From positions 1 through 64,000 of IMG/VR virus record IMGVR_UViG_3300042923_000569: a stretch of DNA of 64,000 nt. One strand, 5' to 3'. The translations under genes and the position numbers were made by a program. The notes beneath the pieces were generated by a model, which saw only the letters and a program-made list of their open reading frames with translations, was not told the DNA's origin and searched no databases. Positions 2,323 through 54,294 of this stretch are shown here, piece by piece. The first letter of the stretch is position 1, and every line of letters starts with the position of its first letter.

Positions 2323-2351
2323 ATTATAGCATAAATTGTTTCTTTGTTTCA
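2323..2351 (-). promoter_or_regulatory. TGAAAC-class promoter of topoisomerase operon
   Basis: TGAAAC-17 bp-TATAAT with extended -10 TGc. Confidence 0.8.
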
Positions 2352-2380
2352 AAAAAATAACGACGCATATAGCGTCGTTA
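2351..2380 (-). terminator. Intrinsic terminator
   Basis: TAACGACGC/GCGTCGTTA stem followed by a T7 run on the minus strand. Confidence 0.8.
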
Positions 2381-2384
2381 ATAT

Positions 2385-2750
2385 TTATAGAAGAACTAAG
2401 ATAGCAATAATGACGTAGTGAGTCAAATGGTGTGCCATCTGGTCTAATCCTAAGTACCACCAGAACTGAGGTTTAGTACTGTCAGTAGTTCGTGATGCCT
2501 CAACCTTTACTTTATCTACAATAAAATGCACTACAAAGTCTAATACTGCAACAGCAAGTGCAATTTTAAATCCAAAGAATAAACCAATTAAGAAAGTACC
2601 GATGAAATGTACCGCTGCGTGTGCAGTTAATGGTAATTCCCATCCTTCTTTCTTAAACTTACCTAACATGTAAGTACCCTGCAAAGGGTAATCACATACA
2701 AAATGCTTAATTTGAAATGCTATTAAAAGAATAAAAAGTGTGACAATCAT
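2385..2750 (-). CDS. DUF3307-like membrane protein
   Basis: HFVCDYPLQ, L..H..VH, HFIVD..K, GLDQMAHH pattern; hydrophobic helices. Confidence 0.75.
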   Translation of the reverse strand: MIVTLFILLIAFQIKHFVCDYPLQGTYMLGKFKKEGWELPLTAHAAVHFIGTFLIGLFFGFKIALAVAVLDFVVHFIVDKVKVEASRTTDSTKPQFWWYLGLDQMAHHLTHYVIIAILVLL

Positions 2751-2757
2751 AATTACC

Positions 2758-5109
2758 TTATTTTACTAGTAGGAATTGAAGGTCGGCTGAAGGTGAATCT
2801 TCATCGCCCCAATATTTGTGAAATTTCTCTGGTGTTGCTCTTTGAATAATTTCGCCATCAGAAACTACATATACTTCATGATTGGAAATTAACTTCTGCC
2901 AAAAACGAATAGCATCTTCTGAATGCAACGTATCACTCAAAATCTGTAGACCGCTTTTAATCATATCCATATACATCTGATAGACTATTCCTTTACGTCC
3001 ACGCTTTGCTGCAATAGCTTCAATGTGAAATACCTTACCAATTAACTGACCACTAACTACTGCAATCTCATTACCTGAATCGTCATACGCCATATATCCA
3101 GAACCATTTTTTGATTTAGCCACGGAAAATCCATCATGTTCAGCAACAGGGATCATTTTATCTCTTGAATTCAACTTTGCAGTTTTATCAACAAATTCAA
3201 CAGGGTCTGTATCAGCAAATGCATCAAATCGTTGTGGCATTTCTTGTAATTGATCCTTATTAATTAATTCCTGTTCATCAGCATCATCAATATCGTGCTC
3301 TAACTCTGCATTCTGAACAATATCAGCTAACCCACGCATAGAAGATTCAGCCATTGCAGACATACGTTCTTTACGGGATGCAGTACGTTCTACGTAATAA
3401 TCTAGACGCTCATCAAAATCAGCAATATCACTTGCACTTAGGAGTGCTTTAGAAATATGTCTAGGTTCAACTTCCGGTTTGTAATAACTTTCAAATAACT
3501 TGTTGGCAAAAGATTCAAAATCTTGTTCCTTCAAATTATTGAACATGTTTTCACCACCATTCATGTCGAGTGAATATTTTTTACCAGAAGATTGAACTGT
3601 CATCTTGAATTTTACACCAGCCATCTCAATTTCAAAATAACCTTCATCTTCAATATAATCATTAAATGTGATGTTCTTAGTACTATCTTGATTTAAGAAC
3701 TCTGCACTTTCAGCAAGGTTTTCAACTGCAAATAATAACCCATTTAAATTTGCATCAGGAGTTGATTCATCTTCTAACTTGTCTTTTAGCTTTAGAATAT
3801 TTCTCATATTTCCAAGATATTCAATTGGTAATGATGCCATTTGTTCTTTAGTTAGATCAATGCGAAGCTTTTTCTCATCACCTTCTTTAACTAGTAGGAA
3901 ATATTCGTCTTCGTATCTTTTTCTAAAAACTACTGAATATGATGGTTGATACCCACCATCAACAAATAATGTAAACTGTTCTGGATCTTCCATATTCACA
4001 TCATTATTGGTGGTTGGTTGCTGATCATATTCTCTCCATACTCGAAGATATAAATCCCCCATTAGGCTTTGTCCAGCTTCAGGGTAATCTAAACTCTTTT
4101 GTGAGTGGTGCCCGTCGGAAATATCCTTCTCTGATGAATCAAATTCATGATCTTCATCTTGATTTAAATCATTATCATAAAAGTTATTTACGAACTTATA
4201 AATCAATTTCATTGCCTTATTTGCACGAGCATCCTCTTTGTACTTTCTAAGTACTGAAATGATTTTGGATTGACCAAGAGTTTTCATAGCATATTGTATG
4301 GAATTGGAAATATCTTTATTTTTATTTCCAGTAAGTTCATCTTTATTATTTTCAAGCCATTGAGTTGCACGCAACGCCAAATCTTGAACTTGTGGTCCAA
4401 ATTCAACCCCACCAGCATAATATCTGTCATCACCTGTATGGGAGCCACTATAGCCTTTAGCACGCATAGTTTGCTGATCATTTGGATTCAAATTTTTTAA
4501 AACTACTGATTGAATAGTGTGTTGTAACTCATGCTGTACAGTATCCATAAAGTAATTTAGATGATCCACTATTGCATTAATATCATTACTGTTTTTTATT
4601 TCAGCATTATAATTAGGAACACCAAGATCTAACTCATTATAAGTTTCATCAGTACCACTACTACCAGCTTTATCAATGAATTGATTACTGATTTTCATAG
4701 TAATACGCATTTTATCAATAAGTTCTTTGGTCTTTGGATTTTTCTTTAAATTATCAGGTAATTGATTAAAGATCTCATCTGCATCCAATTTAAGATTAGT
4801 ACTACTGTTAACATACTTTTTCAAGTCATTTGGTGAAAGTACCGAAGCATTATATTTTCGCTGGAACCTTTTGCACCAATTCAATAGTGCAGTGGCTTTT
4901 TCAGATTGGCCTTTATTTTGTAAATCATGCTGTTTCATTACAGCCATTGTTAAGAGTACTGAACCAATAAATTTCTGTACTCTCTGTAATAATGCTGGTG
5001 GTACATTTAAAACACCAACACCTCTAGCTTCATCCAGTACCTGTTCTTCTTCAGCCGGAGGCTGGATTGCAGCATTTAAATGCTCATGAGCCTTACTTAT
5101 ATTTGGCAT
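2758..5109 (-). CDS. Multidomain protein: N-terminal HExxH zincin-like domain, C-terminal GNAT-like domain; probable internal head protein
   Basis: QHELQH plus YY..G.EF.PQ; C-terminal FHIEAIAAKRGRKGIVYQMY...SD...AIRFWQKL; LDEA and LQEM putative protease sites. Confidence 0.6.
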   Translation of the reverse strand: MPNISKAHEHLNAAIQPPAEEEQVLDEARGVGVLNVPPALLQRVQKFIGSVLLTMAVMKQHDLQNKGQSEKATALLNWCKRFQRKYNASVLSPNDLKKYVNSSTNLKLDADEIFNQLPDNLKKNPKTKELIDKMRITMKISNQFIDKAGSSGTDETYNELDLGVPNYNAEIKNSNDINAIVDHLNYFMDTVQHELQHTIQSVVLKNLNPNDQQTMRAKGYSGSHTGDDRYYAGGVEFGPQVQDLALRATQWLENNKDELTGNKNKDISNSIQYAMKTLGQSKIISVLRKYKEDARANKAMKLIYKFVNNFYDNDLNQDEDHEFDSSEKDISDGHHSQKSLDYPEAGQSLMGDLYLRVWREYDQQPTTNNDVNMEDPEQFTLFVDGGYQPSYSVVFRKRYEDEYFLLVKEGDEKKLRIDLTKEQMASLPIEYLGNMRNILKLKDKLEDESTPDANLNGLLFAVENLAESAEFLNQDSTKNITFNDYIEDEGYFEIEMAGVKFKMTVQSSGKKYSLDMNGGENMFNNLKEQDFESFANKLFESYYKPEVEPRHISKALLSASDIADFDERLDYYVERTASRKERMSAMAESSMRGLADIVQNAELEHDIDDADEQELINKDQLQEMPQRFDAFADTDPVEFVDKTAKLNSRDKMIPVAEHDGFSVAKSKNGSGYMAYDDSGNEIAVVSGQLIGKVFHIEAIAAKRGRKGIVYQMYMDMIKSGLQILSDTLHSEDAIRFWQKLISNHEVYVVSDGEIIQRATPEKFHKYWGDEDSPSADLQFLLVK

Positions 5110-5110
5110 A

Positions 5111-7276
<2,166 letters not shown>

Positions 7277-7288
7277 AAGTATTAGTTA

Positions 7289-7819
7289 TTAAATGTCACC
7301 TGGGAAATCGCGACGGATAAGATTTTCAAGTAATTCCATACTATCCATTGATTCTGATTCATAAATTTCAATCATATCAGTTTCAAGTTCATTACCTGTT
7401 GCGACATTGGCAGTTTCAACCATACAAGAGAATGTATGCATTAGTTCCATAGTACCTTTCGCTACTACAGCAGAACCTTCATGATGAATAGCATTCACAA
7501 TGTTATGAGTTTCTTCATAATCTTTGCGGAAAATGTCAGCCACAATCTGTTCAACATAACTAGCTGAGGTTGTAGCATTATCAAGAATAACAAGTTCAAA
7601 TTGTGGAACTTTTAATGTTGAAACTGGATTGTCTTTAAGGAAAGCATCAAAGCCGTACTTAATTGCATCCAATTCTTCCAAATCAAAAGAATCTTTAATT
7701 TTTGAAACATAATCAGTAATATCATTCGTGCCGACAATATAATATACTGAGTTTTTGTAAGAAGCTTTAACCACATCAGTACCAAATAGTGAGAAAACTT
7801 CACGTACAATATTAACCAT
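7289..7819 (-). CDS. clpS: ClpS-like adaptor with N-terminal extension
   Basis: ELVILDNATT...VEQIVADIF...IVNAIHHEGSAVV aligns to ClpS YKVILVNDDYT...AVHYQGKAI. Confidence 0.7.
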   Translation of the reverse strand: MVNIVREVFSLFGTDVVKASYKNSVYYIVGTNDITDYVSKIKDSFDLEELDAIKYGFDAFLKDNPVSTLKVPQFELVILDNATTSASYVEQIVADIFRKDYEETHNIVNAIHHEGSAVVAKGTMELMHTFSCMVETANVATGNELETDMIEIYESESMDSMELLENLIRRDFPGDI

Positions 7820-7886: not shown

Positions 7887-8396
7887 TTATTTTGCTTTAA
7901 CTGTGCAGGTGATATTGTTTCCCTGTACTGCAATTTGTTGAACAAACTCAGACTCATTAATACGAGAAACTACTTCTTTCAAGCGTTCAGTATTTGCTTT
8001 AACGAGTTCAGGGTTTGCTCGTGTACGTCCTGCCATTTTCATGACAATACGAACATGTTTACCTTCTTCAATAAACTTTTGTGCAGACTTTAATTTAGTA
8101 CTCAAGTCATGTTCATGAGTGTTGTATGCGAATTGTACTTCTTTAATTTGAACTGCGGTTTCACGCTGTTTCTTTTTGTTGTTCTTTTCAGTTTGTTTTT
8201 GATCGTACAAGTACTTGTTAAGATCAGCAACTTTAACAACGGGAACATCTTGTTCAGATACTTGAATTAAATCTAATTCTTTACTGTAAGCAAAAGAAAG
8301 TGCAGCAGCGATTGCCATTACTTTGCTAGAACCGTCTTCTTCTACTAAACGAACGTTCTTTGCAGTAATTTTTTCGTTGGCAATAACAGATTTCAT
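7887..8396 (-). CDS. infC: Translation initiation factor IF-3 (both domains)
   Basis: NEKITAKNVRLV, A...A....LDLIQVS...PVVKV.D..KYLY..K, IKEVQF.......HDL..K......F...G..V. Confidence 0.93.
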   Translation of the reverse strand: MKSVIANEKITAKNVRLVEEDGSSKVMAIAAALSFAYSKELDLIQVSEQDVPVVKVADLNKYLYDQKQTEKNNKKKQRETAVQIKEVQFAYNTHEHDLSTKLKSAQKFIEEGKHVRIVMKMAGRTRANPELVKANTERLKEVVSRINESEFVQQIAVQGNNITCTVKAK

Positions 8397-8434: not shown

Positions 8435-8462
8435 ATCATAACATAAATTTCAGATTTGTCAA
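8435..8462 (-). promoter_or_regulatory. Host sigma70-type promoter of IF-3 gene
   Basis: TTGACA-16 bp-TATGAT with extended -10 TG. Confidence 0.65.
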
Positions 8463-8466: not shown

Positions 8467-8661
8467 TTATCGCTTGTCGTCTGCGTCTTTCAATGCTTTG
8501 CAGATTTCTTGTACAAATTTCAAATTTGCAATAGCAGTATCTGCAACACTGCGGGTACGTGGATAAGGGGCTTCTTTAGACATTTTTTCTAAATCATAAA
8601 TTATCTTATCAAAAGCAGAAACGTCCTCTAGAATCCTATCATAAAAAGTTTTGTCGTCCAT
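8467..8661 (-). CDS. Hypothetical protein (64 aa)
   Basis: ORF with SD GGAG in operon context. Confidence 0.55.
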   Translation of the reverse strand: MDDKTFYDRILEDVSAFDKIIYDLEKMSKEAPYPRTRSVADTAIANLKFVQEICKALKDADDKR

Positions 8662-8682
8662 GTCAACTCCATGTTGAAAATA

Positions 8683-10633: not shown

Positions 10634-11955
<1,322 letters not shown>

Positions 11956-11980: not shown

Positions 11981-12009
11981 ATTATACCATAATCGTCTTA
12001 TACGTTTCA
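11981..12009 (-). promoter_or_regulatory. TGAAAC-class promoter (frd-rnhA-dda operon)
   Basis: TGAAAC-17-TATAAT, TGg extended -10. Confidence 0.8.
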
Positions 12010-14205: not shown

Positions 14206-14591
14206 TACCATTCTCCATAATATGCATCACCGTACTGAACAGTGATGTGTCCGATTTCTGCGAATTGTGGTTCAATATTCGAAAGAATAAAAAGCAAATC
14301 CTCGCAGTACTTCTTAATGTATTCTTCACTAAAATCAGAACTTTTAATCTGAATTAGAATGTTTGTTGCATTTGATGAACCGCCAATAAAAGTACTATCA
14401 TCGTATTCATAAATGGCATCTAGTAATTCACCCTCAAAAGGTGAATCGAAAAGACCGGCGGTTAAATCAATTGATACTAACGATTCTGCAAACTCATTAA
14501 GATGTAATTTCTTAATTGTTCTTTTAGAACGTGCTGATGTTTTTGGTAATGATTCTTTTACTTTTGAAAATGTATACTGCATTTTTATCAC
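14205..14591 (-). CDS. yggL: YggL/DUF469-like ribosome-associated protein
   Basis: RSKRTIKKLHLNEF vs E. coli RSRRLRKKMHIDEF; C-terminal DAYYGEW vs DVWWD. Confidence 0.7.
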   Translation of the reverse strand: MIKMQYTFSKVKESLPKTSARSKRTIKKLHLNEFAESLVSIDLTAGLFDSPFEGELLDAIYEYDDSTFIGGSSNATNILIQIKSSDFSEEYIKKYCEDLLFILSNIEPQFAEIGHITVQYGDAYYGEW

Positions 14592-14821
14592 TTGCGATTA
14601 GTACGACGAGCTTTACGAGCTACTTTATTTGAAGCACGACGTTTTGCTTTAATTTTACGCTTCAATGCTTTATCTGAATCTTTCTTCATATAATAACCAG
14701 AAAGACGTTCAATCATTTTACGAGTATATTCAAGGTCCGCTTCAGTCATTTCATAACCAGGAACTTCTTCTGCTGCTGCTTCTAGATTGTTGTTTACCAT
14801 TTGATTTAGTTTCTCGTTCAT
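14588..14821 (-). CDS. Hypothetical protein with basic tail
   Basis: Ends KRRASNKVARKARRTNRK; first gene after the promoter at 14850. Confidence 0.6.
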   Translation of the reverse strand: MNEKLNQMVNNNLEAAAEEVPGYEMTEADLEYTRKMIERLSGYYMKKDSDKALKRKIKAKRRASNKVARKARRTNRK

Positions 14822-14849: not shown

Positions 14850-14878
14850 ATTATACCACAAATCTTTCGTCTGTTTCA
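14850..14878 (-). promoter_or_regulatory. TGAAAC-class promoter
   Basis: TGAAAC-17-TATAAT, TGg. Confidence 0.8.
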
Positions 14879-15078
14879 TTTTCTTGCCGATTTAGAATAG
14901 GCATGAAGTATGCAATTTTATCTGTAGGAATATGCTGCAATCCCTGTAGTACTATGCCATTGTCATAAGTTTCAATGATCATGTCAGTAAACTGTTCACC
15001 CGATATTAGTTTAATGTAATACGGATATGATGGATCAAAAGAGAACACATCTTGAATTGTTGGATTTTGATTAGCCAT
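14851..15078 (-). CDS. Hypothetical protein (start likely MANQN; the longer call overlaps a terminator)
   Basis: Open frame, weak SD. Confidence 0.4.
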   Translation of the reverse strand: MANQNPTIQDVFSFDPSYPYYIKLISGEQFTDMIIETYDNGIVLQGLQHIPTDKIAYFMPILNRQENETDERFVV

Positions 15079-15094
15079 TAATATAATTCTCATT

Positions 15095-15118
15095 AAAAAA
15101 GGAGGCATAGCCTCCTTT
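15095..15118 (-). terminator. nrdB terminator
   Basis: AAAGGAGGC/GCCTCCTTT stem plus T run. Confidence 0.8.
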
Positions 15119-20641: not shown

Positions 20642-21343
20642 TTACATTTCTCCACGCTGAGTATAATATTGCTCTACTCGTTCAATCCACATACGTTTAG
20701 CTTCTTCGAAGTCTTCACCTTCTATAATAAATTCTTGATAGACAAGATTTTCAGGATCTGCTCGAACACAAATAAAAATAACACCACGTTGAATATCAGT
20801 TCCGTGTTGTTGATTGTGTGCCAAGGCATAAGCGGCTAACTGAAGACGATAGTTTTCAATATATTCCCACGTCTTAGGTTTTCGTGAATTTTTATAATCC
20901 ATTATAGAAGGGATACCGTTGTGCATTCCTACTAAGTCTGTCGTTCCAGCCCAAAGACCATTATAAAACAACGGAACTTCCTGGCCCCAAATCTCATTGA
21001 TAGCAGGCCATGCATTCATCTGAATACAATCTGCCATGTTTCGGGCAAGTACTCGTATTGGCATTCCACCATGATGATCAGGATCGCCAACTAATCTGCG
21101 TTCCAAATTCTCATGCATGAAGGTTCCGACTGTGGTTGCTTCTAATGTTATTTCTTTTGCTGCGGCTTCACCGACTCTTGCTCTCCACTTCTTCAATCCT
21201 TCATCATCAGAGGTGGCACTTAGTATTGTAGTCACGGATGGTAGGTTTCCACTTGGGGTAGAATAAAGGCGACCATCGGGGCCGCCTTCAATTCGTTCAT
21301 AACCGACATACGTGTACTTATTGATAATAGGTGGAATGTACAT
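20642..21343 (-). CDS. PD-(D/E)XK exonuclease (MGME1/cyanophage exonuclease-like)
   Basis: LPSVTTILS, GT..H..LE, E..L....WAGT.D, IMDYKNS, QL.AYA.A. Confidence 0.85.
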   Translation of the reverse strand: MYIPPIINKYTYVGYERIEGGPDGRLYSTPSGNLPSVTTILSATSDDEGLKKWRARVGEAAAKEITLEATTVGTFMHENLERRLVGDPDHHGGMPIRVLARNMADCIQMNAWPAINEIWGQEVPLFYNGLWAGTTDLVGMHNGIPSIMDYKNSRKPKTWEYIENYRLQLAAYALAHNQQHGTDIQRGVIFICVRADPENLVYQEFIIEGEDFEEAKRMWIERVEQYYTQRGEM

Positions 21344-21356: not shown

Positions 21357-21385
21357 ATTATAGCACATGTTTTTCGTTTGTTTCA
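21357..21385 (-). promoter_or_regulatory. TGAAAC-class promoter
   Basis: TGAAAC-17-TATAAT, TGc. Confidence 0.8.
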
Positions 21386-26731: not shown

Positions 26732-27778
26732 TCAAATCCATTTGTCTGTTTGTACTCTTATGTCGAATCTGTCAGTGAATATGCTTTTATGTAGAAGTTG
26801 TAAACAAAACAACCTTCCGTACTTTGCACATGCCTCATCAAAATCCTTTATGTGACGAATTCCATTTTCATCACGAACTGTTCCGAAATCAGGCATTGCT
26901 ACACTGAATCCGTTTTCTATAGCTTGTTCTATTGTGACTAAACCATCCTTATCACGATCTGGAACAATAACTATATTTTTTCCACGTTCAGAGGCTTTAT
27001 GCAACAATTCTAATTGTGCAGAACTCATGAAGTAGTTATTAGAAGCCATGCCGCCCATTAATGCTGCGTCAATTGGTCCTTCTCCGACAAGAATAGTTTG
27101 TATTCTGTCATCATTTAGTAAATCGAAGTTATAAAAAATGCTCGTGCTAACTTGATTACGATATCTGTACTGACTATCTTTATCAATATGACGAGCGGTA
27201 TAACCGATAATGTTTCCATTCATATAGTACGGAATTATGAATCTCTGAAACATATAAAATTCTTTAGACGGACTCCAGTACAAATCTAAGTCCAACAGAT
27301 AGGGATTACGCTCATTTACTGCATTTACAACTTTAATAAAATCTGGCGGTATGTTTTCCATATTCACCCATTCTAAAAAAGGCTTTGCATCGCTTGGCAT
27401 CTCTCTCTGTACGATTTTCTGATATAACTTAGACGCAGCAGTATCCTGTACTTCATAGTCTCCACTTTCAACCATCTCTTTTGCAATTAACTTAATTGCA
27501 GCGAGTTGTTTATCGTTTGCACCATAAGAATTAAGAAGCGTTTCCATATCACGACTTAAGTATCTTCCAGGCGACCATCCAGTTTTTAAGTGGCAGTTAA
27601 AACAGTTATAGGTAACGGAACCATCGTTTCTAAACATATGGTTTCCGCGACCCTTGGTATCTGGTCTTGATTGCCCTCTGTACACACAAGCAGGGCAATT
27701 GTGTTGATTCCAGCGGTCCATTATTGGTGCCGGATCATGCATAATTGATGATATAATATCTTGTATCTGATTCATCAT
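26732..27778 (-). CDS. gp61: DNA primase
   Basis: Zn finger CPAC...CFNC; IIPY...GYTAR; TOPRIM EGPIDA, PDRDKDG, KDFD. Confidence 0.9.
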   Translation of the reverse strand: MMNQIQDIISSIMHDPAPIMDRWNQHNCPACVYRGQSRPDTKGRGNHMFRNDGSVTYNCFNCHLKTGWSPGRYLSRDMETLLNSYGANDKQLAAIKLIAKEMVESGDYEVQDTAASKLYQKIVQREMPSDAKPFLEWVNMENIPPDFIKVVNAVNERNPYLLDLDLYWSPSKEFYMFQRFIIPYYMNGNIIGYTARHIDKDSQYRYRNQVSTSIFYNFDLLNDDRIQTILVGEGPIDAALMGGMASNNYFMSSAQLELLHKASERGKNIVIVPDRDKDGLVTIEQAIENGFSVAMPDFGTVRDENGIRHIKDFDEACAKYGRLFCLQLLHKSIFTDRFDIRVQTDKWI

Positions 27779-27810: not shown

Positions 27811-27839
27811 ATTATACCATAAATCTTAAATCTATTTCA
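27811..27839 (-). promoter_or_regulatory. TGAAAC-class promoter, TGAAAT variant (primase-helicase)
   Basis: TGAAAT-17-TATAAT, TGg. Confidence 0.7.
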
Positions 27840-32226: not shown

Positions 32227-32664
32227 TTAATAATAATTGTTGTCTTCGTCTTCATCGTCCTGATAATAATCTTCGTCATCATCAGTACAGCCGTAGAACT
32301 CCAATCCATAAGTTTCACATAATTCCTGAATTTTATCGACGTCAGTATCAAGATACACATCAAAATTACCAGATACGCTAATCACATCAATGTAGGATTT
32401 AGCATCAGTACTGGCATAGATAATGTCATATTTGTGTTCTTTGTCGAATTTAGCATCAAGTCGTGTTTTAATGTCGTAGATATTAACCCACGAATCATCA
32501 TCCGCTTGGCAGCGGTACACATAGGTGTCATCTGTTTCTAGATCCGGTATGTAATCAACCGAAAACACCATATCATCGATTAATGATTCCTCTGTTATTA
32601 GGGTATCAATAATCTCCAAAATTTCAGAATCGCCAATAAAGGCAAGACTAGATCGAAGTTCCAT
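32227..32664 (-). CDS. Highly acidic hypothetical protein
   Basis: About 42 D+E vs about 9 K+R in 145 aa (hand count). Confidence 0.65.
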   Translation of the reverse strand: MELRSSLAFIGDSEILEIIDTLITEESLIDDMVFSVDYIPDLETDDTYVYRCQADDDSWVNIYDIKTRLDAKFDKEHKYDIIYASTDAKSYIDVISVSGNFDVYLDTDVDKIQELCETYGLEFYGCTDDDEDYYQDDEDEDNNYY

Positions 32665-32715
32665 TTCAAAATTCCTTTTGTTCCATATGCCTATATTATA
32701 TCACAAATTTTATTT

Positions 32716-34200
32716 TCATTCCATATTTTCCCAATCAGAAACGATAGTTTGTTCATATGGGTATTGTACTTCATTGTAATATGCAATACGTTCTCGTTGG
32801 TGCTTAGCACTGTACTTATTAGAACCTGAAATATCAAAAATCTCTACGTGATCTTTATCTTCTGCACGGCGTAATCCACGTCCAATACTCTGAATAGTCC
32901 TTACAAAACTCTTACCGGGTTCAATGAGTACTACATTATATAAACGACTGATACTAATACCAGTACTTGCAACACCATAGGTAGCAATAAGTATTTTGTT
33001 ATCAGCCCAACGAATTTCACCATATGAAGCTTCACGATCTTTCTTCTTTGTCTTACCCCTAACAAACTCGGTAACTGGAATTCCTAAGAATTCACATAGT
33101 AGTTCCCCAGCTTCCAATCTATCTACTAGTACTAACGTGTTACCAGTTTCTGCAATAGCAGCTATGAATGTAGCAATATACTGCATTCTTGCTCTATCAG
33201 TAACTAGGTACTTTAATTCTTCCTGATAGTTAGAAAACTTCATCTTACTTTGCATCTTAATACAGTTAACGTTACATGTACTAAGAATCTTTTTATCTTG
33301 AAGTTCTTTTGCTGAGATTGTATAAATTATGTCACCAACATTACACTTAATCTTAGCTGCTAGTACTGGATCTTTTGGAATAGTACCAGTTAAACCCCAG
33401 CGTAACGGAATATTACACATGACCTGTCCAAGTACTGCATGTAGTGCTTCTGCTGCACTGGTATGTGCTTCATCTACAATAACTGCAATAACTCCACTGA
33501 TAAAGTCATTAACATCCTGTTCAGTTAGTTCTAGTTCACCCTTTTTGGTTTTCTTCCATAGGGAGTTAAGTGACTGCCATGTAGTAATAGTATGTTGGTG
33601 ATTAAGTTCTTTTTTATCACCATAGAACACACCAGCATCAAGACCACACATTTCATAGTCATTATATGTCTGCTGAACAAGATCTTTGTTAGGTACGATG
33701 ATAATACTTCTTCCGTACTTCTCAACACTTTTAGACATTGCAGCAGTAATTAGTGTTTTACCAGAACTAGTACTTGCTAATAGCAATCCATGTGGATTTC
33801 TTAGACACGCATTTACAGCATTTACCTGGTGTTCACGAAGGATTATTTTTTCACCTTCCATGTGGTGACCAGCAGGAAATTCTACATAATCGAAAATATT
33901 CTCATCAATTTCTTCAAACTCAAAGTTATGTTGAATACGTTGATCTTCGATATCGATCATTATGTTATGTTTTTCAAGAATAGGTAGTAATTGCTCTAAC
34001 ATATGATAGCTAGTAGCACCACCGATGTTCATAAAGTTCACTTTACCATCCCAGCGGCCCATTCTTCCCGCTGGGGTAAATTTTGCATATGGTAGTGTGA
34101 ATGAAACCTTACGAATCATTTCTTGACGAATATTAGGGGCAAGCCCCTCAAATTTACAGTTAACTTCATCCTGAAGAATTAACTTACAAGTTCCACTCAT
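32716..34200 (-). CDS. uvsW: UvsW-like SF2 helicase
   Basis: LREHQ, TSSGKT, VDEAH, GLTGT, ATYGVASTGISI, QSIGRGLR. Confidence 0.93.
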   Translation of the reverse strand: MSGTCKLILQDEVNCKFEGLAPNIRQEMIRKVSFTLPYAKFTPAGRMGRWDGKVNFMNIGGATSYHMLEQLLPILEKHNIMIDIEDQRIQHNFEFEEIDENIFDYVEFPAGHHMEGEKIILREHQVNAVNACLRNPHGLLLASTSSGKTLITAAMSKSVEKYGRSIIIVPNKDLVQQTYNDYEMCGLDAGVFYGDKKELNHQHTITTWQSLNSLWKKTKKGELELTEQDVNDFISGVIAVIVDEAHTSAAEALHAVLGQVMCNIPLRWGLTGTIPKDPVLAAKIKCNVGDIIYTISAKELQDKKILSTCNVNCIKMQSKMKFSNYQEELKYLVTDRARMQYIATFIAAIAETGNTLVLVDRLEAGELLCEFLGIPVTEFVRGKTKKKDREASYGEIRWADNKILIATYGVASTGISISRLYNVVLIEPGKSFVRTIQSIGRGLRRAEDKDHVEIFDISGSNKYSAKHQRERIAYYNEVQYPYEQTIVSDWENME

Positions 34201-36786: not shown

Positions 36787-37827
36787 TTAGCCGCCTTTAG
36801 CTTTTAGCTTAGCAACTAGCTCGGCTGGAGATAGTTTAGCGGTGGTAGCTGCTGGAGTTGCTGCTTTAACAGGTTCTACAGGAGCAGATTCAACAGCGGC
36901 TGGTTTAGTTTCAGCTACTACTGGAGTAGATGGAACTGAAGCAGTTTGTGCTGCTGGAGTAGTTGGAGCGGTAGTGCTTGAACCAGTTGCTGGTTTTTGA
37001 ACGCCTGCTGGACGATAGAACTCAGCCCAACGTGCAGGATCGTATGCTTCACCGTTACAAGATGCTTCGAACATCTCACGAATCGCATTCAATTCTTCTG
37101 GAGTTGGTTGTTTTGGCATGAATTCACTTAGAGTGAATAGACCATATTGTTCAATCGCTTCTAGTTCATCACCGTTTAGTGGACGCTCGGAGAATTTGAA
37201 CTGAGATGAGTCATAGGTATTGAAACCACCACCATTTTTAGTCTTGATTACACGGAAATCACGTCCATGCTGATAATCAGTTGGTAGTTCTGCCACATCT
37301 GGATTCAAAATGATAGATTTGATTTTTTCAAACAAATCTTTGTTCACTAGAACACGGCGAATTGGGTTTTCAGGTGCGTTGTCGTCTTTAACTTCAACTG
37401 AGCCTGGTGCAATCATGCATTGGAATAGATAAGTTTTCTTTTTCCAGTACTGTGATGCTTGTTTAGATAGATCTTCGTTACCTGTCTCTTTAGCCACTTT
37501 ATACCACTGACGAATCTCGGTAAGAATAGGACAAGAGTTTGGAACCCACATTTCGTTGCATGGAACTTGTAGACGTACTTTATCAGTGTGTACACCTTTC
37601 ACGCCGTTGAAAGTAAGATTAATCATCTCACGCTCACGCCAGAAGTAAGTGTTATTCTGATCTGCGTCTGGTAGAAAACGTAGATTTAGATCTTGGTTTT
37701 CAGGAATGTTCCAGAACGCTAGAAATGCGTCAGGTTGACCATTTCCGGTAAAGGTTCCGCTTTTTGCTGCTTCAGCTTTTGCCGCTTCAGCCGCTAGTAA
37801 TGCACGAATTTCTGCTAATGATGCCAT
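36787..37827 (-). CDS. gp32: Single-stranded DNA-binding protein (start moved to MASLAE)
   Basis: LRFLPD, CPI......W, KK.YLFQ, PTDY..G.DF...K..., Y..S.F; SD AAGGA. Confidence 0.88.
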   Translation of the reverse strand: MASLAEIRALLAAEAAKAEAAKSGTFTGNGQPDAFLAFWNIPENQDLNLRFLPDADQNNTYFWREREMINLTFNGVKGVHTDKVRLQVPCNEMWVPNSCPILTEIRQWYKVAKETGNEDLSKQASQYWKKKTYLFQCMIAPGSVEVKDDNAPENPIRRVLVNKDLFEKIKSIILNPDVAELPTDYQHGRDFRVIKTKNGGGFNTYDSSQFKFSERPLNGDELEAIEQYGLFTLSEFMPKQPTPEELNAIREMFEASCNGEAYDPARWAEFYRPAGVQKPATGSSTTAPTTPAAQTASVPSTPVVAETKPAAVESAPVEPVKAATPAATTAKLSPAELVAKLKAKGG

Positions 37828-37909
37828 TTTTGATTTCCTTATCAATTTGCTTCTTGGTTTCTTTGTTTAATTTGCTTATTGTCGCCAGCTTCATGCCGTT
37901 GACTTTCAT

Positions 37910-37938
37910 ATTATACCACAATATTTCGTGGCGTTTCA
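37910..37938 (-). promoter_or_regulatory. TGAAAC-class promoter P1 of gp32
   Basis: TGAAAC-17-TATAAT, TGg. Confidence 0.8.
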
Positions 37939-38039
37939 TTTTTCTCTACTATACACAGGTAAAATACCTAAAGTACAATAAAATAAAATGGCTTTTAAGT
38001 CTGTGCTGACTATATCTGAGTTGCCTCAAATCTATTTAC

Positions 38040-38068
38040 ATTATACCACAAAAAGGTATAACGTTTCA
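38040..38068 (-). promoter_or_regulatory. TGAAAC-class promoter P2 of gp32
   Basis: TGAAAC-17-TATAAT, TGg; flanked by TAAATA on both sides. Confidence 0.8.
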
Positions 38069-39412: not shown

Positions 39413-41122
<1,710 letters not shown>

Positions 41123-41179: not shown

Positions 41180-41695
41180 TTACGATGATCTAACAGTTAC
41201 AACTCTGTTATACATAAATGCATGATTTTTAGGTATTTCATAATTATCAACAAAAATATATTCAAAATTCCTTCCACGTAATCCATTTTCTACATCTTGA
41301 ATAAAATAAATCTTAGAATTATTAGAGAAAGTGAATGTATTTGAGGTACGTTGTTCAAGAGTAATAAATCTTTGGTCTTCTGGTAGACGTTCTTGGAATT
41401 TATCAAATAATTCATTAATAATATCAAAATTATATCTAAAGATACTATATGACTTTCCACAAAGTGCCACATTAATATTTTTATTGAATAAAACTGTCCA
41501 TAATGCAGCTATCATAATTGTTGTTGTAGTTCCATCACCACGATTTGTAATAATTTCGTAATGGTCTGAATGATCCATATTAATAATATGGTTCATATCA
41601 TTCATTTGATGTTCTCTAAGACATATTTCTAGATATTCTTCTATAAAATAGAAAATAGTTTGTCTACAAATTTCATATTCTAATGCATAATTCAT
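41180..41695 (-). CDS. Truncated, degenerate terminase-ATPase paralog (pseudo-ATPase)
   Basis: Colinear with TerL N-domain: YFIE, HQ, NRGDGTTT, LW..LFN, FSNNSKI, LRG, IFVDNY. Confidence 0.75.
   Translation of the reverse strand: MNYALEYEICRQTIFYFIEEYLEICLREHQMNDMNHIINMDHSDHYEIITNRGDGTTTTIMIAALWTVLFNKNINVALCGKSYSIFRYNFDIINELFDKFQERLPEDQRFITLEQRTSNTFTFSNNSKIYFIQDVENGLRGRNFEYIFVDNYEIPKNHAFMYNRVVTVRSS

Positions 41696-42239: not shown

Positions 42240-42240
<1 letters not shown>
41740..42240 (-). CDS. Conserved hypothetical protein
   Basis: TAATG-coupled to rnh; KS..Y.PGW, YGPFKT. Confidence 0.65.
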
Positions 42241-43286
<1,046 letters not shown>

Positions 43287-46601: not shown

Positions 46602-47333
46602 TTATGCACCACTTACGTAGATGCTATATACTGCAACACCAGTATCAACTGTTACGTTTAACATACCAGTTTTGGTAAATCCTAATGACTTACTTTCAGC
46701 ATTAGATACGCGGTTTAATGCTTGAAGTACGCGGTCAATTGGATAACCGTAACCTTTGGTTAGTTCACCTTCTGTTTTAGAGAATAGTAAAGTACCGGTA
46801 TGGTTGTTTTTATTCTTTTCACCAACGTAAAAATATAAACTATCGTCTTCAGTGAAGGGAGTGACTAAAGCAGAGAATGATTTAAACACACCTGAGAAAC
46901 TTTTTAGTTCATTGACCTTAGAAGCACTAGGTGTAACCTGTACGTCATAAGCTTGGTCAGTAAAACGTGGTTGAGGTGGAATATATTTTTCCGCAACAAC
47001 TAGATAGTTGGTATTTGCATCGTCTGAATTGAAAGTTAAGCTTTTAACTACATTATCTTTCGCATTCACACTAATTTTAGTACTTTCTGATTTGTAGACA
47101 TTTAAGTTTAGTAGACCTTGAAGCATTCCAAGATTACCAATACCAAAACGACCAACAACTTCAGGTACATCTTCCTTGGTATATGCACGCATAACCAAAG
47201 TTTTATCGGCTGTATAAGCTTCCATGTAAACACGTTGACCTTGACCGCGATCTTCGCTAGAAACTGCGATACAATCAAAATCAATACCAGATGTGGTTGT
47301 TACTAGGTCGCGTAGTACGTCACGTAATTCCAT
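46602..47333 (-). CDS. gp45: Sliding clamp-like protein
   Basis: 243 aa, two-domain beta/alpha periodicity, position near DNA polymerase; weak sequence evidence. Confidence 0.55.
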   Translation of the reverse strand: MELRDVLRDLVTTTSGIDFDCIAVSSEDRGQGQRVYMEAYTADKTLVMRAYTKEDVPEVVGRFGIGNLGMLQGLLNLNVYKSESTKISVNAKDNVVKSLTFNSDDANTNYLVVAEKYIPPQPRFTDQAYDVQVTPSASKVNELKSFSGVFKSFSALVTPFTEDDSLYFYVGEKNKNNHTGTLLFSKTEGELTKGYGYPIDRVLQALNRVSNAESKSLGFTKTGMLNVTVDTGVAVYSIYVSGA

Positions 47334-47365: not shown

Positions 47366-47394
47366 ATTATACCAGAATAATTCTACCCGTTTCA
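47366..47394 (-). promoter_or_regulatory. TGAAAC-class promoter overlapped by an 8-bp inverted repeat
   Basis: TGAAAC-17-TATAAT; AACGGGTA/TACCCGTT flanks the -10. Confidence 0.8.
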
Positions 47395-47891: not shown

Positions 47892-50800
47892 TTACCAAGC
47901 GAAGAAACCAGTGTTTAATTCGATGGTACTTTTCTCTGTTATACCAATATCCATATCAAGAATACCGAAGATATTACCTAATTTCTTAGTTAGTACTGCC
48001 ATTTCCATAGTATCGTCATCGAATGGTAATTCCATGAACCAATTTGGTAAGTAGTCTGCACAGTCAATTGGGTATCCAACTTTAGTAATCCCTAGTGGAT
48101 TAGGTTTTAGGTCACATACGATAACTTTTGTACCGTCTGTTGCTTCTGGAACTGATTTATCATCGTTTAATTCACGAAGTTTATTCCAGTAGATTGCTGC
48201 TTTAACATGACCAACTGAACATTTTCCTGTTTCCTGGAATTCTTTCTCTTTGTTGGTATAGTTCTTAACAGTTTTTGGTGATCCCTTCTCTACGCTTGGT
48301 TTATCTTTAAACTCACGTTTAAAAGTACGTACTCGGTTACGTAATTCTTCCTCAGATTCACCAACTAGTAATGCGATTAGTGTTTCTTCAAGGAAATTCT
48401 GGATGTATTTTGGTGTGTCTGAACGTTTAATTTCAAGACCCATTGCCTTAATTTCACCAGGTGAACCGTTTTCATCCTTACGGAATCCATCTTCCCAAAA
48501 CTTTAGAATTGCATAACGTTTCTTTTTCAAGAATAAACCACGAGAACCGACCATTTCTAGATCTGCACCAACGATTTTACCGTTTTCAAGACCAGTATTG
48601 AAAGTTGTATCCATAAATTCAGGGAATGATGAACCTACTGTATCACCAATCATCTGATATAGTTCAACTACTTCAGAACGTGATAGGTTAAATTCCATAT
48701 CATTTTCTTTATAGTAGTGTGCAACACTGAAATATACTGAGTCAGTATCGCCATATACTACTACACCACCATTATGATCGTAAGTTTCAGTACATACTTC
48801 ATTAATCTTACTTGCAAGGTGTTTAGTCATACTACGACCAGTTAAAGTAACTGATTGTCCTAGTCGTTTATCGAAGAAACGAGAACCTTTATTCAACAAC
48901 GCACCATATAGTGAGTTTAAAAGAATCTTACGAATCTGTTGGTTCTGCTTCCAGAAATCAGACTGAGTTTTACAGTACTTTTTATCAGAATCAGCCACAA
49001 ATAAACGACCATCTTCAATTCTCATGCCATTTTGTGCAATAATCTTTGCTATTTCAGCAGGATTCTTATCAGCAATTGCTAGACGAAGCAAATAAATTGG
49101 ATCATCTTCATGAAGGTTGGTTTTATGTAGTCCATTTCCAGATTGTAATGACTTTAACTCATTTTCTAAGTCAGCTAGCATATTTTCAGGCATTTCCCAG
49201 CCATCGGTAGCCAAGTGCTTATAGTCAATTACCATTTTCTGTTGTGCTTTACGTTCAGAATACCAAACTGTAAGAATTTCTGGAATTACACCATACTTCG
49301 TCTTATCAAAAAGTGTTCCATTTGCACTTAATACAATAGTACTGTCAGAATTAAAGATAATGTCATATAATTCTTCGCCGGTTGCTTGGAAACTCGTACC
49401 ATCTTCTAAATCTACGGTAATTACTTCCTGTGATTTCTCACGAACCATAGTGAATTCGACGCTTGCAAACAAACCATGCCATGCTTCAGTCCATTTAGGA
49501 TCGAATTTACCACGACCACCATTTTTAGCCCATTTAACACGCTGTTCTTCAATTTTAGATGCCAAATATGCATCAGTGTAATCCTGTCGCAATTGTCCAA
49601 GAATACATTCAGTACTCATGCCTAATGTGCGAAGAACTGTTGGGTATAGTGAGTTAAAGTCCACGCAACCTAACATATCAATCAATCCAAGAATAGGATC
49701 TTGTACCCATGCTCCAGCAGCTTTAGAACCACTTTGTGATTCACCATCTTCATCATCATCTAAGTCAATATCATAATCTTGATACGCAAAATCTTCTTCT
49801 TCTTCAACTTTACGTTTATTGAATACTACTTCACCACGTTGGTGAGCAAGATTTATAATTGCGGTGTCAATTAGTGCTACTGAACCCATAGTTGTTGTGA
49901 TTAACACACATTCTTTATGAGCAAGACGGTTATGTAGGTTGATAAAGTCCATCTTTTCATCGATTTTCTTAAGTAAGATACTATCTTGCTTAGAATAACG
50001 AAGAAAACGCATATAATCTTCACGATATAGCTTATCTAATGAACCATCATATGGTACTTTGTTCTCGCCAGTTACTTTCTCTGCAATATAATCAAGTTTA
50101 TATGACTGTTCAACTTGACCAGCATGTTTTTTGTATAGTGCAAGGTAATCTAAGTGGACGCGTCCAACTAAATCGTAGGTAACGATGGTTTTACCGAACA
50201 TATCTGCTTCACGTGCATTTGGTTTTTTATTCCATAAGCACCAGCGAGCTAATGTAGCTTCATTGAAAACCTTTCTGGTACGGTTAACCATATATGGAAT
50301 ATCAAAGAACTCACTATTCCAACCAGTAAGAATGTCACTATCTTCAATTAGCTCAAAGAAGGTTTCAAACATCTCTGATTCTTCAGTATATAGTACTACT
50401 ATACTGTTTGGATCATTGGTTTCAGCATTTAAACGATTAATAATGTCCTGTGCCTCAATATTATCCATACCAGTAGGTGCCATAGTAAGAACATAGTCTT
50501 TACCTGACCAACTTTGGTATAGTGATATTGCAGTTACACGGTTAAATGGATCACTTGGGGAGGCATAACCAAATTTAGGGTGAAAGTCGGTTTCGATATC
50601 GAAATAAGCGATGTTTAAATCGGGTGAAGGCTTACCCATGTAGTGTTTTGCAAGGGTTTTAAACGTAACATTACAATCCGCTTCATAAATCTTAGCAGAT
50701 GCAGGTAATGATTCCATTTGGCGTTTCATTTCAGAATACCGGGAGAATTCAAACTTCTCGGCCATAGTACCGTTGATAGTTTTATGCTCACCGTTTGGAG

Positions 50801-50921
50801 ATTCTACATAGTATTCATATACTGGCTCAATTTCACGCAGTATACGACGACCATTGACACGTTCTGCTACATGCAAAACTTCTCCGGTGCGTTTTCTATC
50901 CATATATCCATCTATATACAT
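47892..50921 (-). CDS. gp43: Family B DNA polymerase
   Basis: FDIET, WN...FD.PY, DFNSLYP, KILLNSLYG, YGDTDS, KKRY; no intein. Confidence 0.97.
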   Translation of the reverse strand: MYIDGYMDRKRTGEVLHVAERVNGRRILREIEPVYEYYVESPNGEHKTINGTMAEKFEFSRYSEMKRQMESLPASAKIYEADCNVTFKTLAKHYMGKPSPDLNIAYFDIETDFHPKFGYASPSDPFNRVTAISLYQSWSGKDYVLTMAPTGMDNIEAQDIINRLNAETNDPNSIVVLYTEESEMFETFFELIEDSDILTGWNSEFFDIPYMVNRTRKVFNEATLARWCLWNKKPNAREADMFGKTIVTYDLVGRVHLDYLALYKKHAGQVEQSYKLDYIAEKVTGENKVPYDGSLDKLYREDYMRFLRYSKQDSILLKKIDEKMDFINLHNRLAHKECVLITTTMGSVALIDTAIINLAHQRGEVVFNKRKVEEEEDFAYQDYDIDLDDDEDGESQSGSKAAGAWVQDPILGLIDMLGCVDFNSLYPTVLRTLGMSTECILGQLRQDYTDAYLASKIEEQRVKWAKNGGRGKFDPKWTEAWHGLFASVEFTMVREKSQEVITVDLEDGTSFQATGEELYDIIFNSDSTIVLSANGTLFDKTKYGVIPEILTVWYSERKAQQKMVIDYKHLATDGWEMPENMLADLENELKSLQSGNGLHKTNLHEDDPIYLLRLAIADKNPAEIAKIIAQNGMRIEDGRLFVADSDKKYCKTQSDFWKQNQQIRKILLNSLYGALLNKGSRFFDKRLGQSVTLTGRSMTKHLASKINEVCTETYDHNGGVVVYGDTDSVYFSVAHYYKENDMEFNLSRSEVVELYQMIGDTVGSSFPEFMDTTFNTGLENGKIVGADLEMVGSRGLFLKKKRYAILKFWEDGFRKDENGSPGEIKAMGLEIKRSDTPKYIQNFLEETLIALLVGESEEELRNRVRTFKREFKDKPSVEKGSPKTVKNYTNKEKEFQETGKCSVGHVKAAIYWNKLRELNDDKSVPEATDGTKVIVCDLKPNPLGITKVGYPIDCADYLPNWFMELPFDDDTMEMAVLTKKLGNIFGILDMDIGITEKSTIELNTGFFAW

Positions 50922-50946
50922 CTTATTTCCTTATAATAAACGCAAT

Positions 50947-50980
50947 TAAAAACATAATGCCCCATTCATTGGGGCATTAT
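50947..50980 (-). terminator. Terminator between dsbA and gp43
   Basis: ATAATGCCCCA/TGGGGCATTAT plus GT5. Confidence 0.6.
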
Positions 50981-50986
50981 TTACTA

Positions 50987-51292
50987 TTAGTAGTCTGAGT
51001 CATCCATTTGTGCAAGATTACCAGATACAGTAAGAATAGTTTCTACTTCGTCTTGTGCACGAACTTTATCAAAGAAGTCTTGTTTGTAGATACGCATTGC
51101 AGCAGATTTTAGTTTAGCCTTATCAAGACCAAGCTCATCAGCTAGGGTATCCATGAAGTCACCATATGATTCTTTGATGGTATCAATATGAGTTAGTTGG
51201 ACTACAGCAGAATTGAGGCCATCTTTAAGTTTTTTACGTTGAACGTCATTTAACTCAGTTGCTTCAATTTTAGATTCAGTTTTCTTAGCCAT
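50987..51292 (-). CDS. dsbA: T4 DsbA-like dsDNA-binding protein (GapR/DUF2312-like fold)
   Basis: MAKK..., DELGLDKAK......YK.D....EVE aligns to T4 DsbA DELGVDGK...LYHKD. Confidence 0.7.
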   Translation of the reverse strand: MAKKTESKIEATELNDVQRKKLKDGLNSAVVQLTHIDTIKESYGDFMDTLADELGLDKAKLKSAAMRIYKQDFFDKVRAQDEVETILTVSGNLAQMDDSDY

Positions 51293-51309
51293 TGTATTCT
51301 CCATGTTAT

Positions 51310-51342
51310 AAAAAAAGCACCCTAACTCTCCGTTAGGATGCT
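51310..51342 (-). terminator. Terminator/attenuator overlapping the transcription start of the promoter at 51346
   Basis: 11-bp stem (one G.U), GGAGA loop, U7. Confidence 0.7.
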
Positions 51343-51345
51343 CAT

Positions 51346-51374
51346 ATTATACCAGATCATTTTTTAGCGTTTCA
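51346..51374 (-). promoter_or_regulatory. TGAAAC-class promoter (dsbA-gp43)
   Basis: TGAAAC-17-TATAAT, TGg. Confidence 0.8.
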
Positions 51375-51375
51375 T

Positions 51376-51819
51376 TTATTTGGTGTATTTTTCGACAAGG
51401 ATTGTATGTAGTTCACTTAAACGTACTAACTTTTCAGTTGTTATAATTCCCAAATCGGATTGTAATCTCAGTTCTCTATATTCATCTTTGAGTTGTTCTA
51501 ACTCGCGAATTTCCATCTTATTTTTGTAGTACTCAGTCTCAGTAACATGTTTAAATTCACCATCAATATAATACCACCCATAAGGGTTTTCATTAAATTC
51601 AGAAGGTAAATCTTCTAAAGTTATAATTGAACAATCTACTGGAAATATTTCATAAGGATCAACGAAAGAATATCTAACAAAACAGTTTTCATCAACTGCT
51701 ATCTTAACACTGTTATTATCTAAAGTTTTTCTATATTCATACCAATCAATGCCAGTTGCTGTATCTTTAAGATACAAAACATTGGCAAGTTTTTGTTCAG
51801 GACTATACGTTTTAAACAT
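51376..51819 (-). CDS. Tail fibre assembly chaperone (Tfa/gp38-like)
   Basis: YLKD..G.DWYE, KIA.D, D...IFP....I, W.YIDG; TAATG-coupled to the fibre. Confidence 0.8.
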   Translation of the reverse strand: MFKTYSPEQKLANVLYLKDTATGIDWYEYRKTLDNNSVKIAVDENCFVRYSFVDPYEIFPVDCSIITLEDLPSEFNENPYGWYYIDGEFKHVTETEYYKNKMEIRELEQLKDEYRELRLQSDLGIITTEKLVRLSELHTILVEKYTK

Positions 51820-53432: not shown

Positions 53433-53466
53433 ATAAATCAATCCTCGCGTTTATATATTATAGAGA

Positions 53467-53472
53467 TATTTA
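53467..53472 (-). promoter_or_regulatory. Late-type TAAATA for the tail fibre
   Basis: 35 nt before ATG. Confidence 0.5.
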
Positions 53473-53476
53473 TGAT

Positions 53477-53788
53477 TTAGTCTGTCTCTTCTTCTAAATC
53501 ATCAAATACTGTATCTATCATATTAGCAGCAAGTTTCTTTGGCATTTTATACCATTCTTTTCCTGCACCTTGAGTTGCATTCATAAGCTTCAAGCGTTTA
53601 TTAACTTCTTTTTCGGCGGCTTTAGCATCTTCAAAATACACTTCATGATAGACTTCATAGTCTCTAAACGGAGAACCTGTCTGATAAGTACTTAGACGTG
53701 TTTTCATTTCTTCTTTTGATGTAAATCCAATCTTAACCCATTCAGGCCATGCTTGGTTTACGATTACATAACAGATCTGATTAGACAT
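53477..53788 (-). CDS. T5orf172/GIY-YIG superfamily protein
   Basis: CYVI......VKIGFT......RL..YQTGSP..Y, AEK, KEW. Confidence 0.8.
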   Translation of the reverse strand: MSNQICYVIVNQAWPEWVKIGFTSKEEMKTRLSTYQTGSPFRDYEVYHEVYFEDAKAAEKEVNKRLKLMNATQGAGKEWYKMPKKLAANMIDTVFDDLEEETD

Positions 53789-53816
53789 AGTTCTACCCTC
53801 TTTTTTAGTGGGGTAT

Positions 53817-54251
53817 TTATCCTCTCAAAATCTGCACTTTTACACCGTGATTATTCAAATTTGACAGTACTGGATTAGCATTAATAACCTGTCTGGTGAT
53901 ATTTTGCTGACCGTACAGATTTACTGGATTACTCATTTCCTGCATAGTGGTTGAAGGTAACTCATTCAACATAGGAGCATGAGGATTATCTCGTACCAAT
54001 TTTTCCTGATATTTTTTTAGATATTCTGTATATGTCATTTCCTCAAAATCAGTATACATTATATCATCGACATATGAATCCATACTGTAGTATACCGCAT
54101 CAGTACCACAGCATAGAATTCCAAGGTCTTCGATATAGCCAACCATTTTATTATCTTCATACAATATCTGAAACCGGCTATGAACGCTTTGGTGATAGTA
54201 TTGGCGAGGATTACGATAGACTACTACTGTTGAATTTGGTTTTATGATCAT
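53817..54251 (-). CDS. Hypothetical protein
   Basis: First gene after the promoter at 54266; SD GGAG. Confidence 0.55.
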   Translation of the reverse strand: MIIKPNSTVVVYRNPRQYYHQSVHSRFQILYEDNKMVGYIEDLGILCCGTDAVYYSMDSYVDDIMYTDFEEMTYTEYLKKYQEKLVRDNPHAPMLNELPSTTMQEMSNPVNLYGQQNITRQVINANPVLSNLNNHGVKVQILRG

Positions 54252-54265
54252 ATTATTTCTCCATG

Positions 54266-54294
54266 ATTATACCACAAATTTGAAAGTCGTTTCA
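54266..54294 (-). promoter_or_regulatory. TGAAAC-class promoter
   Basis: TGAAAC-17-TATAAT, TGg. Confidence 0.8.

Follow-up and report, generated by a model that had tools for sequence, protein, structure and literature searches.

Which protein reads a promoter whose -10 element is canonical and whose -35 element is foreign? This question is raised by TGAAAC-N14-TGnTATAAT, an element that recurs on the minus strand of the virus record IMGVR_UViG_3300042923_000569, of which we analyzed the first 64 kb (referred to below as the window). The record is 357,873 bp long and has direct terminal repeats. The window has a G+C content of 36%, and its DNA is about 80 to 82% identical over 10 kb to that of Pectobacterium phage CBB (about 81%), Cronobacter phage GAP32, Serratia phage BF, and related Erwinia and Yersinia phages. 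Judged by this relationship, the phage is a Mimasvirus-type, "Rak2-like" jumbo myovirus. Coding sequence makes up 91% of its genome. The elements are best explained as middle promoters, and we consider it probable that they are read by a phage-encoded sigma factor together with the core RNA polymerase of the host.

A discrete promoter class and the genes behind it

A pattern search allowing at most one mismatch returned 11 sites in the window, all on the minus strand, with 0.13 (maximum 1) expected by chance from dinucleotide-preserving shuffles. These are the same 11 sites that a first-pass annotation of the window had listed, and N14 plus TGn gives them the 17-bp spacer between -35 and -10 that it had described. 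A weight matrix was then built from the sites and run over both strands of the whole genome, and it added a 12th member in the window, TGGAAT-N14-TGATATAAT at 32695-32723 (minus strand), which had been missed. Genome-wide, exact copies number 31 and matrix sites 38, the latter with at least 23 bits each; no position scored between 10 and 20 bits, and the plus strand was without any site. The sites are a discrete, non-random class. That all of them lie on the minus strand, as previously noted for the window, is true of all 38, mostly because of gene orientation, since 478 of 532 crude open reading frames (ORFs) of the genome (about 90%) are on that strand. In a scan of IMG/VR, every contig with several copies of the motif among the matches listed was Mimasvirus-like, and the lone matches listed outside such contigs look like chance.

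The consensus, which like the counts of placement was taken over 37 sites, is longer than the motif first described, whose core was correct. It starts with an A-rich stretch, followed by TGAAAC at -35 to -30 and, in 36 of 37 sites, a purine directly 3' of it. The spacer is variable in its 5' part and A/T-rich in its 3' part and ends in T-R-TGG-TATAAT-A. The TG of the extended -10 (-15/-14, directly before the hexamer), which had been claimed for all sites, is indeed present in 37 of 37, and the preceding T-R in most. Four positions of the TATAAT hexamer are invariant and the other two agree in 36 of 37 sites. The -35 box holds as much information as the -10, and the spacing is rigid. A purine is enriched 7 nt past the -10, and transcription would start at about this distance.

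At least 23 of the 37 sites are wholly intergenic, and the distance to the start codon is mostly 10 to 65 nt. Five sites lie 10 to 20 nt 5' of the mature 5' ends of tRNAs (Met, Pro, Asn, Leu, and Ser), and at least five tRNA genes are directly headed by a site; this placement is not explicable as an artefact of ORF calling. The genome has 30 tRNA genes, located between 272.6 and 329.8 kb and without exception on the minus strand. Three of the promoters were also aligned with their counterparts in eight related genomes: both the -35 hexamer and the extended -10 are invariant or nearly so, whereas in two of the three just 21 to 36% of the spacer positions were invariant. As read from these alignments, selection acts on the -35 and the extended -10 as two blocks at a fixed distance. 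On these features of sequence and placement, we regard the TGAAAC-type sites as promoters.

The genes first downstream of sites in the window include those for a topoisomerase II/GyrB-like protein, a PD-(D/E)XK exonuclease, a primase, a gp32-like SSB, and an RNase H/5'-3' exonuclease, and by the annotation of CBB the DNA polymerase operon also lies behind a site. The earlier view that the class heads DNA-metabolism operons was thus borne out, but it had left out tRNA genes and a late sigma gene. Outside the window, sites precede NUDIX/cytidylyltransferase genes, an AAA ATPase gene, and tRNA genes, and the site at genome position 69176 precedes a gp55-like late sigma gene (phrog_12791, E = 7.6e-156; phrog_234, E = 2.5e-18). 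Structural genes are preceded by ATAAATA-type motifs instead. Since the sites head replication genes, tRNA genes, and the gene of the late sigma factor, the class would act before the late genes, that is, as "middle" promoters.

One RNA run covers part of the region, as contigs without 5' ends, strand, or level. A contig of 1,173 nt covers 36841-38016, from within the gp32-like SSB gene through the promoter at 37910, and ends 17 nt before it would reach the predicted start of a second promoter at 38040; RNA contigs 5' of 38073 are short and thinly covered. The long contig is in weak agreement with a start at the 38040 promoter. An Rfam scan of the window at gathering thresholds found no family, which leaves the leader of the 38040 promoter without a known explanation.

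The phage sigma factor and the -35 box across clades

The genome has one sigma70-family gene, located in the early region outside the window (261344-262333, minus strand), which encodes a protein of 329 amino acids with a GTG start after a GGAG box. A second match to PF04542, at about 114.9 kb of the genome, was rejected as a false positive in a thymidylate-synthase-like ORF, as judged from its sequence. In the sigma protein, Pfam matched regions 2 and 3, and region 4 was recognized via PDB alignment, an AlphaFold (AF2) model, and profile alignment. Compared with SigA and solved sigma factors, the core-binding segment of region 2.2 (GLMKA) and the FSTYAT..IRQ segment of regions 2.3/2.4 are conserved. 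In the model, which was built from 34 homologues, region 4 comprises residues 251-323 (predicted local distance difference test, 84 to 92), with two 4.1 helices, a first helix of the helix-turn-helix (HTH) at 284-290, and a long recognition helix at 303-323, which is preceded by a 12-residue hairpin-like loop where sigma70 has a short turn. The top Foldseek matches of the model were sigmaS and sigmaA in holoenzymes. The segments for core binding and for reading of the -10 are intact in the protein, and it has a region 4. Profile alignment with an RpoD ends right after the first HTH helix, just before the recognition helix, and therefore the DNA-reading helix is the diverged part. With its -10 readers kept and its -35 reader remodelled, the protein is a counterpart of the promoter, where a foreign -35 is joined to a consensus extended -10. 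A small gene of the XRE-type HTH family adjoins the sigma gene.

Box and recognition helix were compared in this phage, GAP32, Munch, EJP2, 121Q, RaK2, and Vibrio phage 2.275.O. The scan of relatives suggested in the first-pass annotation yielded 28 exact copies of the motif in GAP32 and none in the genomes of Munch, 121Q, RaK2, and Vibrio phage 2.275.O. Orthologues of the genes behind the sites of this phage have a promoter in the corresponding place, whose extended -10 is unchanged and whose -35 box differs. Relative to the sigma factor of this phage (100%), that of GAP32 is 78% identical, and both phages have the box TGAAAC (38 and 28 sites) and a helix that starts with SKATLSRRY. The sigma factor of Munch is 45% identical, its helix starts with SRTSLHRCY, and the box is TGGGAC(AA) at 25 sites, in most of which it is 1 bp more distant from the -10; this shift is accompanied in the Munch clade by an insertion of two residues in the loop. 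In EJP2 (42%), TGAGAC(A) at 10 sites goes with NRCTIHRRY; in 121Q (35%), TG(G/A)GAC(A) at 6 + 8 sites with SRSSIHRKY; in RaK2 (31%), TTGAAC(A) at 7 sites on the main strand with VRGTLHYKF; and in Vibrio phage 2.275.O (27%), TGTTAC at 6 sites with TKTTIQRFE. Clade by clade, a different -35 box accompanies a different recognition helix. Other promoter classes are constant across clades: an ACTTGCA-type class is common to this phage, 121Q, and Munch, and TTGACA-type promoters are present in all four genomes, though rarer in this phage. The enterobacterial hosts are taken to have an identical sigma70 (region 4). Since the box is clade specific though the hosts share sigma70 and the other classes are constant, a phage-encoded reader is indicated. 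Some lineages whose sigma factor is just 41 to 51% identical to that of this phage retain the SKATLSRRY helix. The regions around four metagenomic sigma genes are early regions, almost without middle promoters.

In the hydrophobic register of the model, residues 303 and 307 would correspond to R584 and R588 of sigma70, which together with E585 have been linked to the recognition of specific bases at -31 and -33 (PMC2613000). It is possible, with a likelihood that we put somewhat short of even, that the Rak2-like jumbo phages are a natural series of matched sigma/promoter pairs, in which region 4.2 would have been re-tuned at two to three residues at the helix start (K/R/H at 303, S/H/N/Q at 307), each with its own box, TGAAAC, TGAGAC, TGGGAC, TTGAAC, or perhaps TGTTAC, and with an otherwise identical extended -10. 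If this is true, coevolution of sigma factor and -35 element would be documented over hundreds of promoters, and the series would be a source of orthogonal sigma/promoter pairs.

We propose the following order of events, which in our view is probably the correct one. The host sigma70 holoenzyme would transcribe the early region from TTGACA-type promoters, and the 329-residue protein encoded there would associate with the core RNA polymerase of the host. The extended -10 (T-R-TG-G-TATAAT) would be read by its regions 2.4 and 3.0, which are sigma70-like, and TGAAAC(R), 17 bp upstream, by its remodelled region 4.2. The phage sigma factor would thereby turn on the replication and nucleotide-metabolism operons, the tRNA genes, and the gene of the gp55-like sigma factor, which would then serve the ATAAATA late promoters. 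A phage sigma factor was one of two readers suggested in the first-pass annotation, and it is a credible one: there is a single sigma70-family protein, its -10 readers are conserved and its -35 helix is divergent, and box and helix change together.

Several points weigh against a phage sigma factor as the reader. A search of the genome with PF04545 (region 4) gave no match. In region 2.3, TA stands in place of the tryptophan dyad, and region 3.0 has V instead of E458 (what these residues do is described in PMC2613000); given these replacements, reading of the -10 and the TG by the phage sigma factor is an assumption. The joint change of box and helix is a correlation over about five clades nested in one phylogeny, and for any codiverging phage protein the pattern would be no different. 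In vitro, sigma70 can use a perfect TGnTATAAT promoter without -35 contact or region 4.2 (PMC2613000), and aTGAAA matches TTGACA at four of six positions at an 18-bp spacer. Because TGnTATAAT needs no -35 contact, activity with sigma70 in vitro is not decisive against the phage sigma factor. Also, there is no good promoter directly 5' of the sigma gene, which follows a terminator. An intrinsic terminator is located immediately 5' of the gene in this phage (at about 262.4 kb of the genome), GAP32, Munch, and RaK2, which suggests that expression of the sigma factor is limited by read-through. In Munch, a TTGACA-N17-TATTAT promoter is found 5' of the terminator hairpin.

If the phage sigma factor is not the reader, host sigma70 could read the extended -10 while an unrecognized phage activator binds TGAAAC at -35. 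Such an appropriation of sigma70, of the kind known from MotA and AsiA, was the second suggestion of the first-pass annotation, and we consider it unlikely. It would be in keeping with a -10 and TG that are perfect sigma70 consensus, with the precedent of T4, and with the small XRE-type HTH gene beside the sigma gene, and the changes shared within clades fit any phage-encoded reader equally. However, profiles of AsiA (PF09010) and MotA_activ (PF09114) had no match in the complete genome at E ≤ 10, the family of the MotA C-terminal domain not having been searched; no MotA box is present, and the box at -35 to -30 is in the place of sigma region 4. Moreover, a dedicated sigma factor with a remodelled region 4.2 is at hand, which would otherwise be left without an assigned promoter class.

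Less probable still is that host sigma70 alone uses the sites as strong extended -10 promoters, with TGAAAC as a tolerated weak -35 (aTGAAA, 18-bp spacer) or as UP-like context and with timing that results from competition or from shut-off of other promoters. A -35 box as informative as the -10 at a rigid spacing does not fit this explanation, nor does the (near) invariance of the box in relatives, given that two of the three promoters compared have a variable spacer. The box also differs sharply between clades whose hosts are taken to have the same sigma70, and TTGACA-type promoters coexist with it. What speaks for sigma70 alone is that TGnTATAAT promoters need no -35 contact (PMC2613000), that the box matches TTGACA at four of six positions in the 18-bp register, and that the DNA upstream is A-rich. 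Finally, that the sites are not promoters but a dispersed repeat for protein binding, replication, or packaging is very improbable in view of their bipartite sigma-type architecture and co-orientation with genes, their distances of 10 to 65 nt from starts and 10 to 20 nt from tRNA 5' ends, and the retention of orthologous positions across clades, even though a few sites have no ORF of at least 50 amino acids within 600 nt.

Individual sites and other promoter classes

All 12 sites of the window are on the minus strand. The promoter at 2323-2351 is located 34 nt 5' of the topoisomerase II/GyrB-like gene (309-2288), and the one at 11981-12009 is 25 nt 5' of an ORF of 125 amino acids (11578-11955). 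At 14850-14878, the promoter overlaps the 3' end of ORF 14851-15108 and is 28 nt 5' of an ORF of 77 amino acids (14588-14821). The PD-(D/E)XK exonuclease gene (20642-21343) follows the promoter at 21357-21385 after 13 nt, and here -35 and -10 are invariant in the eight related genomes. The primase gene (26732-27778) is preceded at 32 nt by a variant promoter at 27811-27839, which has TGAAAT in this phage and TGGAAT in CBB and GAP32; the 12th member at 32695-32723, 5' of ORF 32227-32664, is kept in the eight related genomes. A tandem pair precedes the gp32-like SSB gene (36787-37845), with the proximal promoter (37910-37938) 64 nt 5' of the gene and the distal one (38040-38068) 130 bp 5' of the proximal one. 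The RNase H/5'-3' exonuclease gene (42240-43247) has its promoter 10 nt upstream (43258-43286), and an ORF of 243 amino acids (46602-47333) has one 32 nt upstream (47366-47394). The promoter at 51346-51374 lies 5' of an ORF of 105 amino acids (50987-51304) and the DNA polymerase gene (47892-50921), with a hairpin and T-run (about 51310-51341) directly after it, and the last one, at 54266-54294, is 14 nt 5' of an ORF of 144 amino acids (53817-54251).

At two of these promoters, 27811-27839 and 32695-32723, the box ends in ATG rather than in AC plus purine, and it does so at both orthologous promoters of the Mimasvirus clade (TGGAATG) as well as of the Munch clade (TGGGATGA). This promoter-specific deviation is retained while the clade-specific part of the box changes.

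Four to five promoters of the class have a strong hairpin and T-run (-13 to -17 kcal/mol) within 5 to 60 nt downstream; they include the one followed by the hairpin at about 51310-51341 (minus strand) of the window and those at genome positions 149206, 208618, and 120076. With a hairpin and T-run so close to the promoter, the predicted transcript would begin with a terminator-like structure, which may serve to terminate the upstream unit or act as a 5' stabilizer or an attenuator. Downstream of the promoters at genome positions 149206, 208618, 257474, and 338624, there is no ORF of at least 50 amino acids for more than 600 nt, and these promoters may drive small ORFs or noncoding RNAs. Contigs of two DNA runs match just a 36-bp promoter stretch of the window, 38033-38068, and continue into the sequence that flanks another promoter, at genome position 117154; promoters of the class are so similar that they cross-match when reads are mapped.

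The class is phage specific, as the first-pass annotation had it, and differs from the TTGACA-type promoters that this genome also has. One such promoter had been described, at the gene of initiation factor IF3. The gene (7887-8396, minus strand) is full length, with Pfam matches to IF3_N and IF3_C, and its promoter is TTGACA-N16-TATGAT at 8435-8462, but it is not alone: a second TTGACA-type promoter is located at 8638-8666, and dozens more are found in the early region at about 220 to 265 kb of the genome. A first family of early promoters there is a near-identical module with a G+C-rich hairpin that contains the -35 TTGACT; the T-run of the hairpin is the spacer before TATACT, which gives a fused terminator-promoter. 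A second family is AGTACTTGCA-N16-TATAAT, in which the -10 is often directly preceded by a second AGTACT; 121Q and Munch have this family as well. Exact TATAAATA is rare (13 copies), and the late motif is the shorter ATAAATA.

Next to the IF3 gene, 7289-7819 (minus strand) encodes a protein with a ClpS-like adaptor domain. The large terminase is represented by two neighboring ORFs at 39413-41116 and 41180-41695 (minus strand; 567 + 171 amino acids). CBB and GAP32 have the same arrangement, with both ORFs annotated as terminase large subunit, and the two ORFs may be a split gene or reflect an intervening element.

Comparison with known systems

The motif itself is already known from CBB and GAP32, which the first-pass annotation had omitted. 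A "divergent RpoD-like promoter" of CBB, which has a -35 of TGAAACG and a TATA -10, was reported by Buttimer et al. (2017; PMC5259590), who found 18 copies by MEME, 11 of them before DNA-synthesis genes and one before a gp55-like gene, and stated that GAP32 carries the same motif. The same study reported early promoters of RpoD-like type, a late motif (ATAAATA), and, in the early region of CBB, a gene for a sigma factor; no reader of the motif was named (PMC5259590). As in this phage, a TGAAACG-type -35 is combined with a sigma70-like -10 before DNA-synthesis genes and a gp55-like gene in a Rak2-like genome. Unlike the CBB study, the present analysis has 38 sites rather than 18, includes promoters of tRNA genes, arrives at a longer consensus, and compares box and helix across clades. 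The motif alone adds little beyond what was published for CBB and GAP32. What is new is the assignment to a middle class via the tRNA and late sigma genes, the failure to find AsiA/MotA homologues, a single sigma factor with a divergent helix, and the clade-wise change of box and helix. This change bears on who reads the promoters and how -35 specificity is encoded, and the proposed mechanism is sharply testable. A literature search found no transcriptome of these enterobacterial phages, several of which, from this large jumbo group, have been proposed for biocontrol.

Promoters of extracytoplasmic function (ECF) sigma factors have TGAAAC-type -35 elements with a conserved AAC, as in the case of Bacillus SigW. 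The -35 hexamer found here is identical, and the likeness to ECF promoters was noted in the first-pass annotation. However, the likeness is superficial: the -10 of ECF promoters is of the CGT type and ECF sigma factors are without region 3, whereas here the -10 is TGnTATAAT. The TATAAT -10 together with the region 3 of the one sigma70-family gene in the genome speaks against an ECF-type promoter.

The middle promoters of T4 likewise serve replication genes and tRNAs before the late genes and combine a sigma70-type -10, often with TGn, with an upstream box that is not that of sigma70. Unlike in T4, no MotA box (TGCTT core centred at -30) is present, as had been recognized from the start, and the AsiA and MotA_activ profiles were unmatched; the sequence and position of the box and the lack of PF09010 and PF09114 matches speak against a T4-type middle promoter. 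The related Pseudomonas phage PA5oct depends on the host polymerase and has TTGAC/TATAATA promoters.

In phages phiEco32 (gp36) and Salmonella phage 7-11 (gp47), an early/middle phage sigma factor redirects the host core polymerase (PMC8948821). The system proposed here differs in that its -10 is the sigma70 consensus. As among the relatives compared here, related phages in those systems keep the positions of their promoters and change the consensus (PMC8948821).

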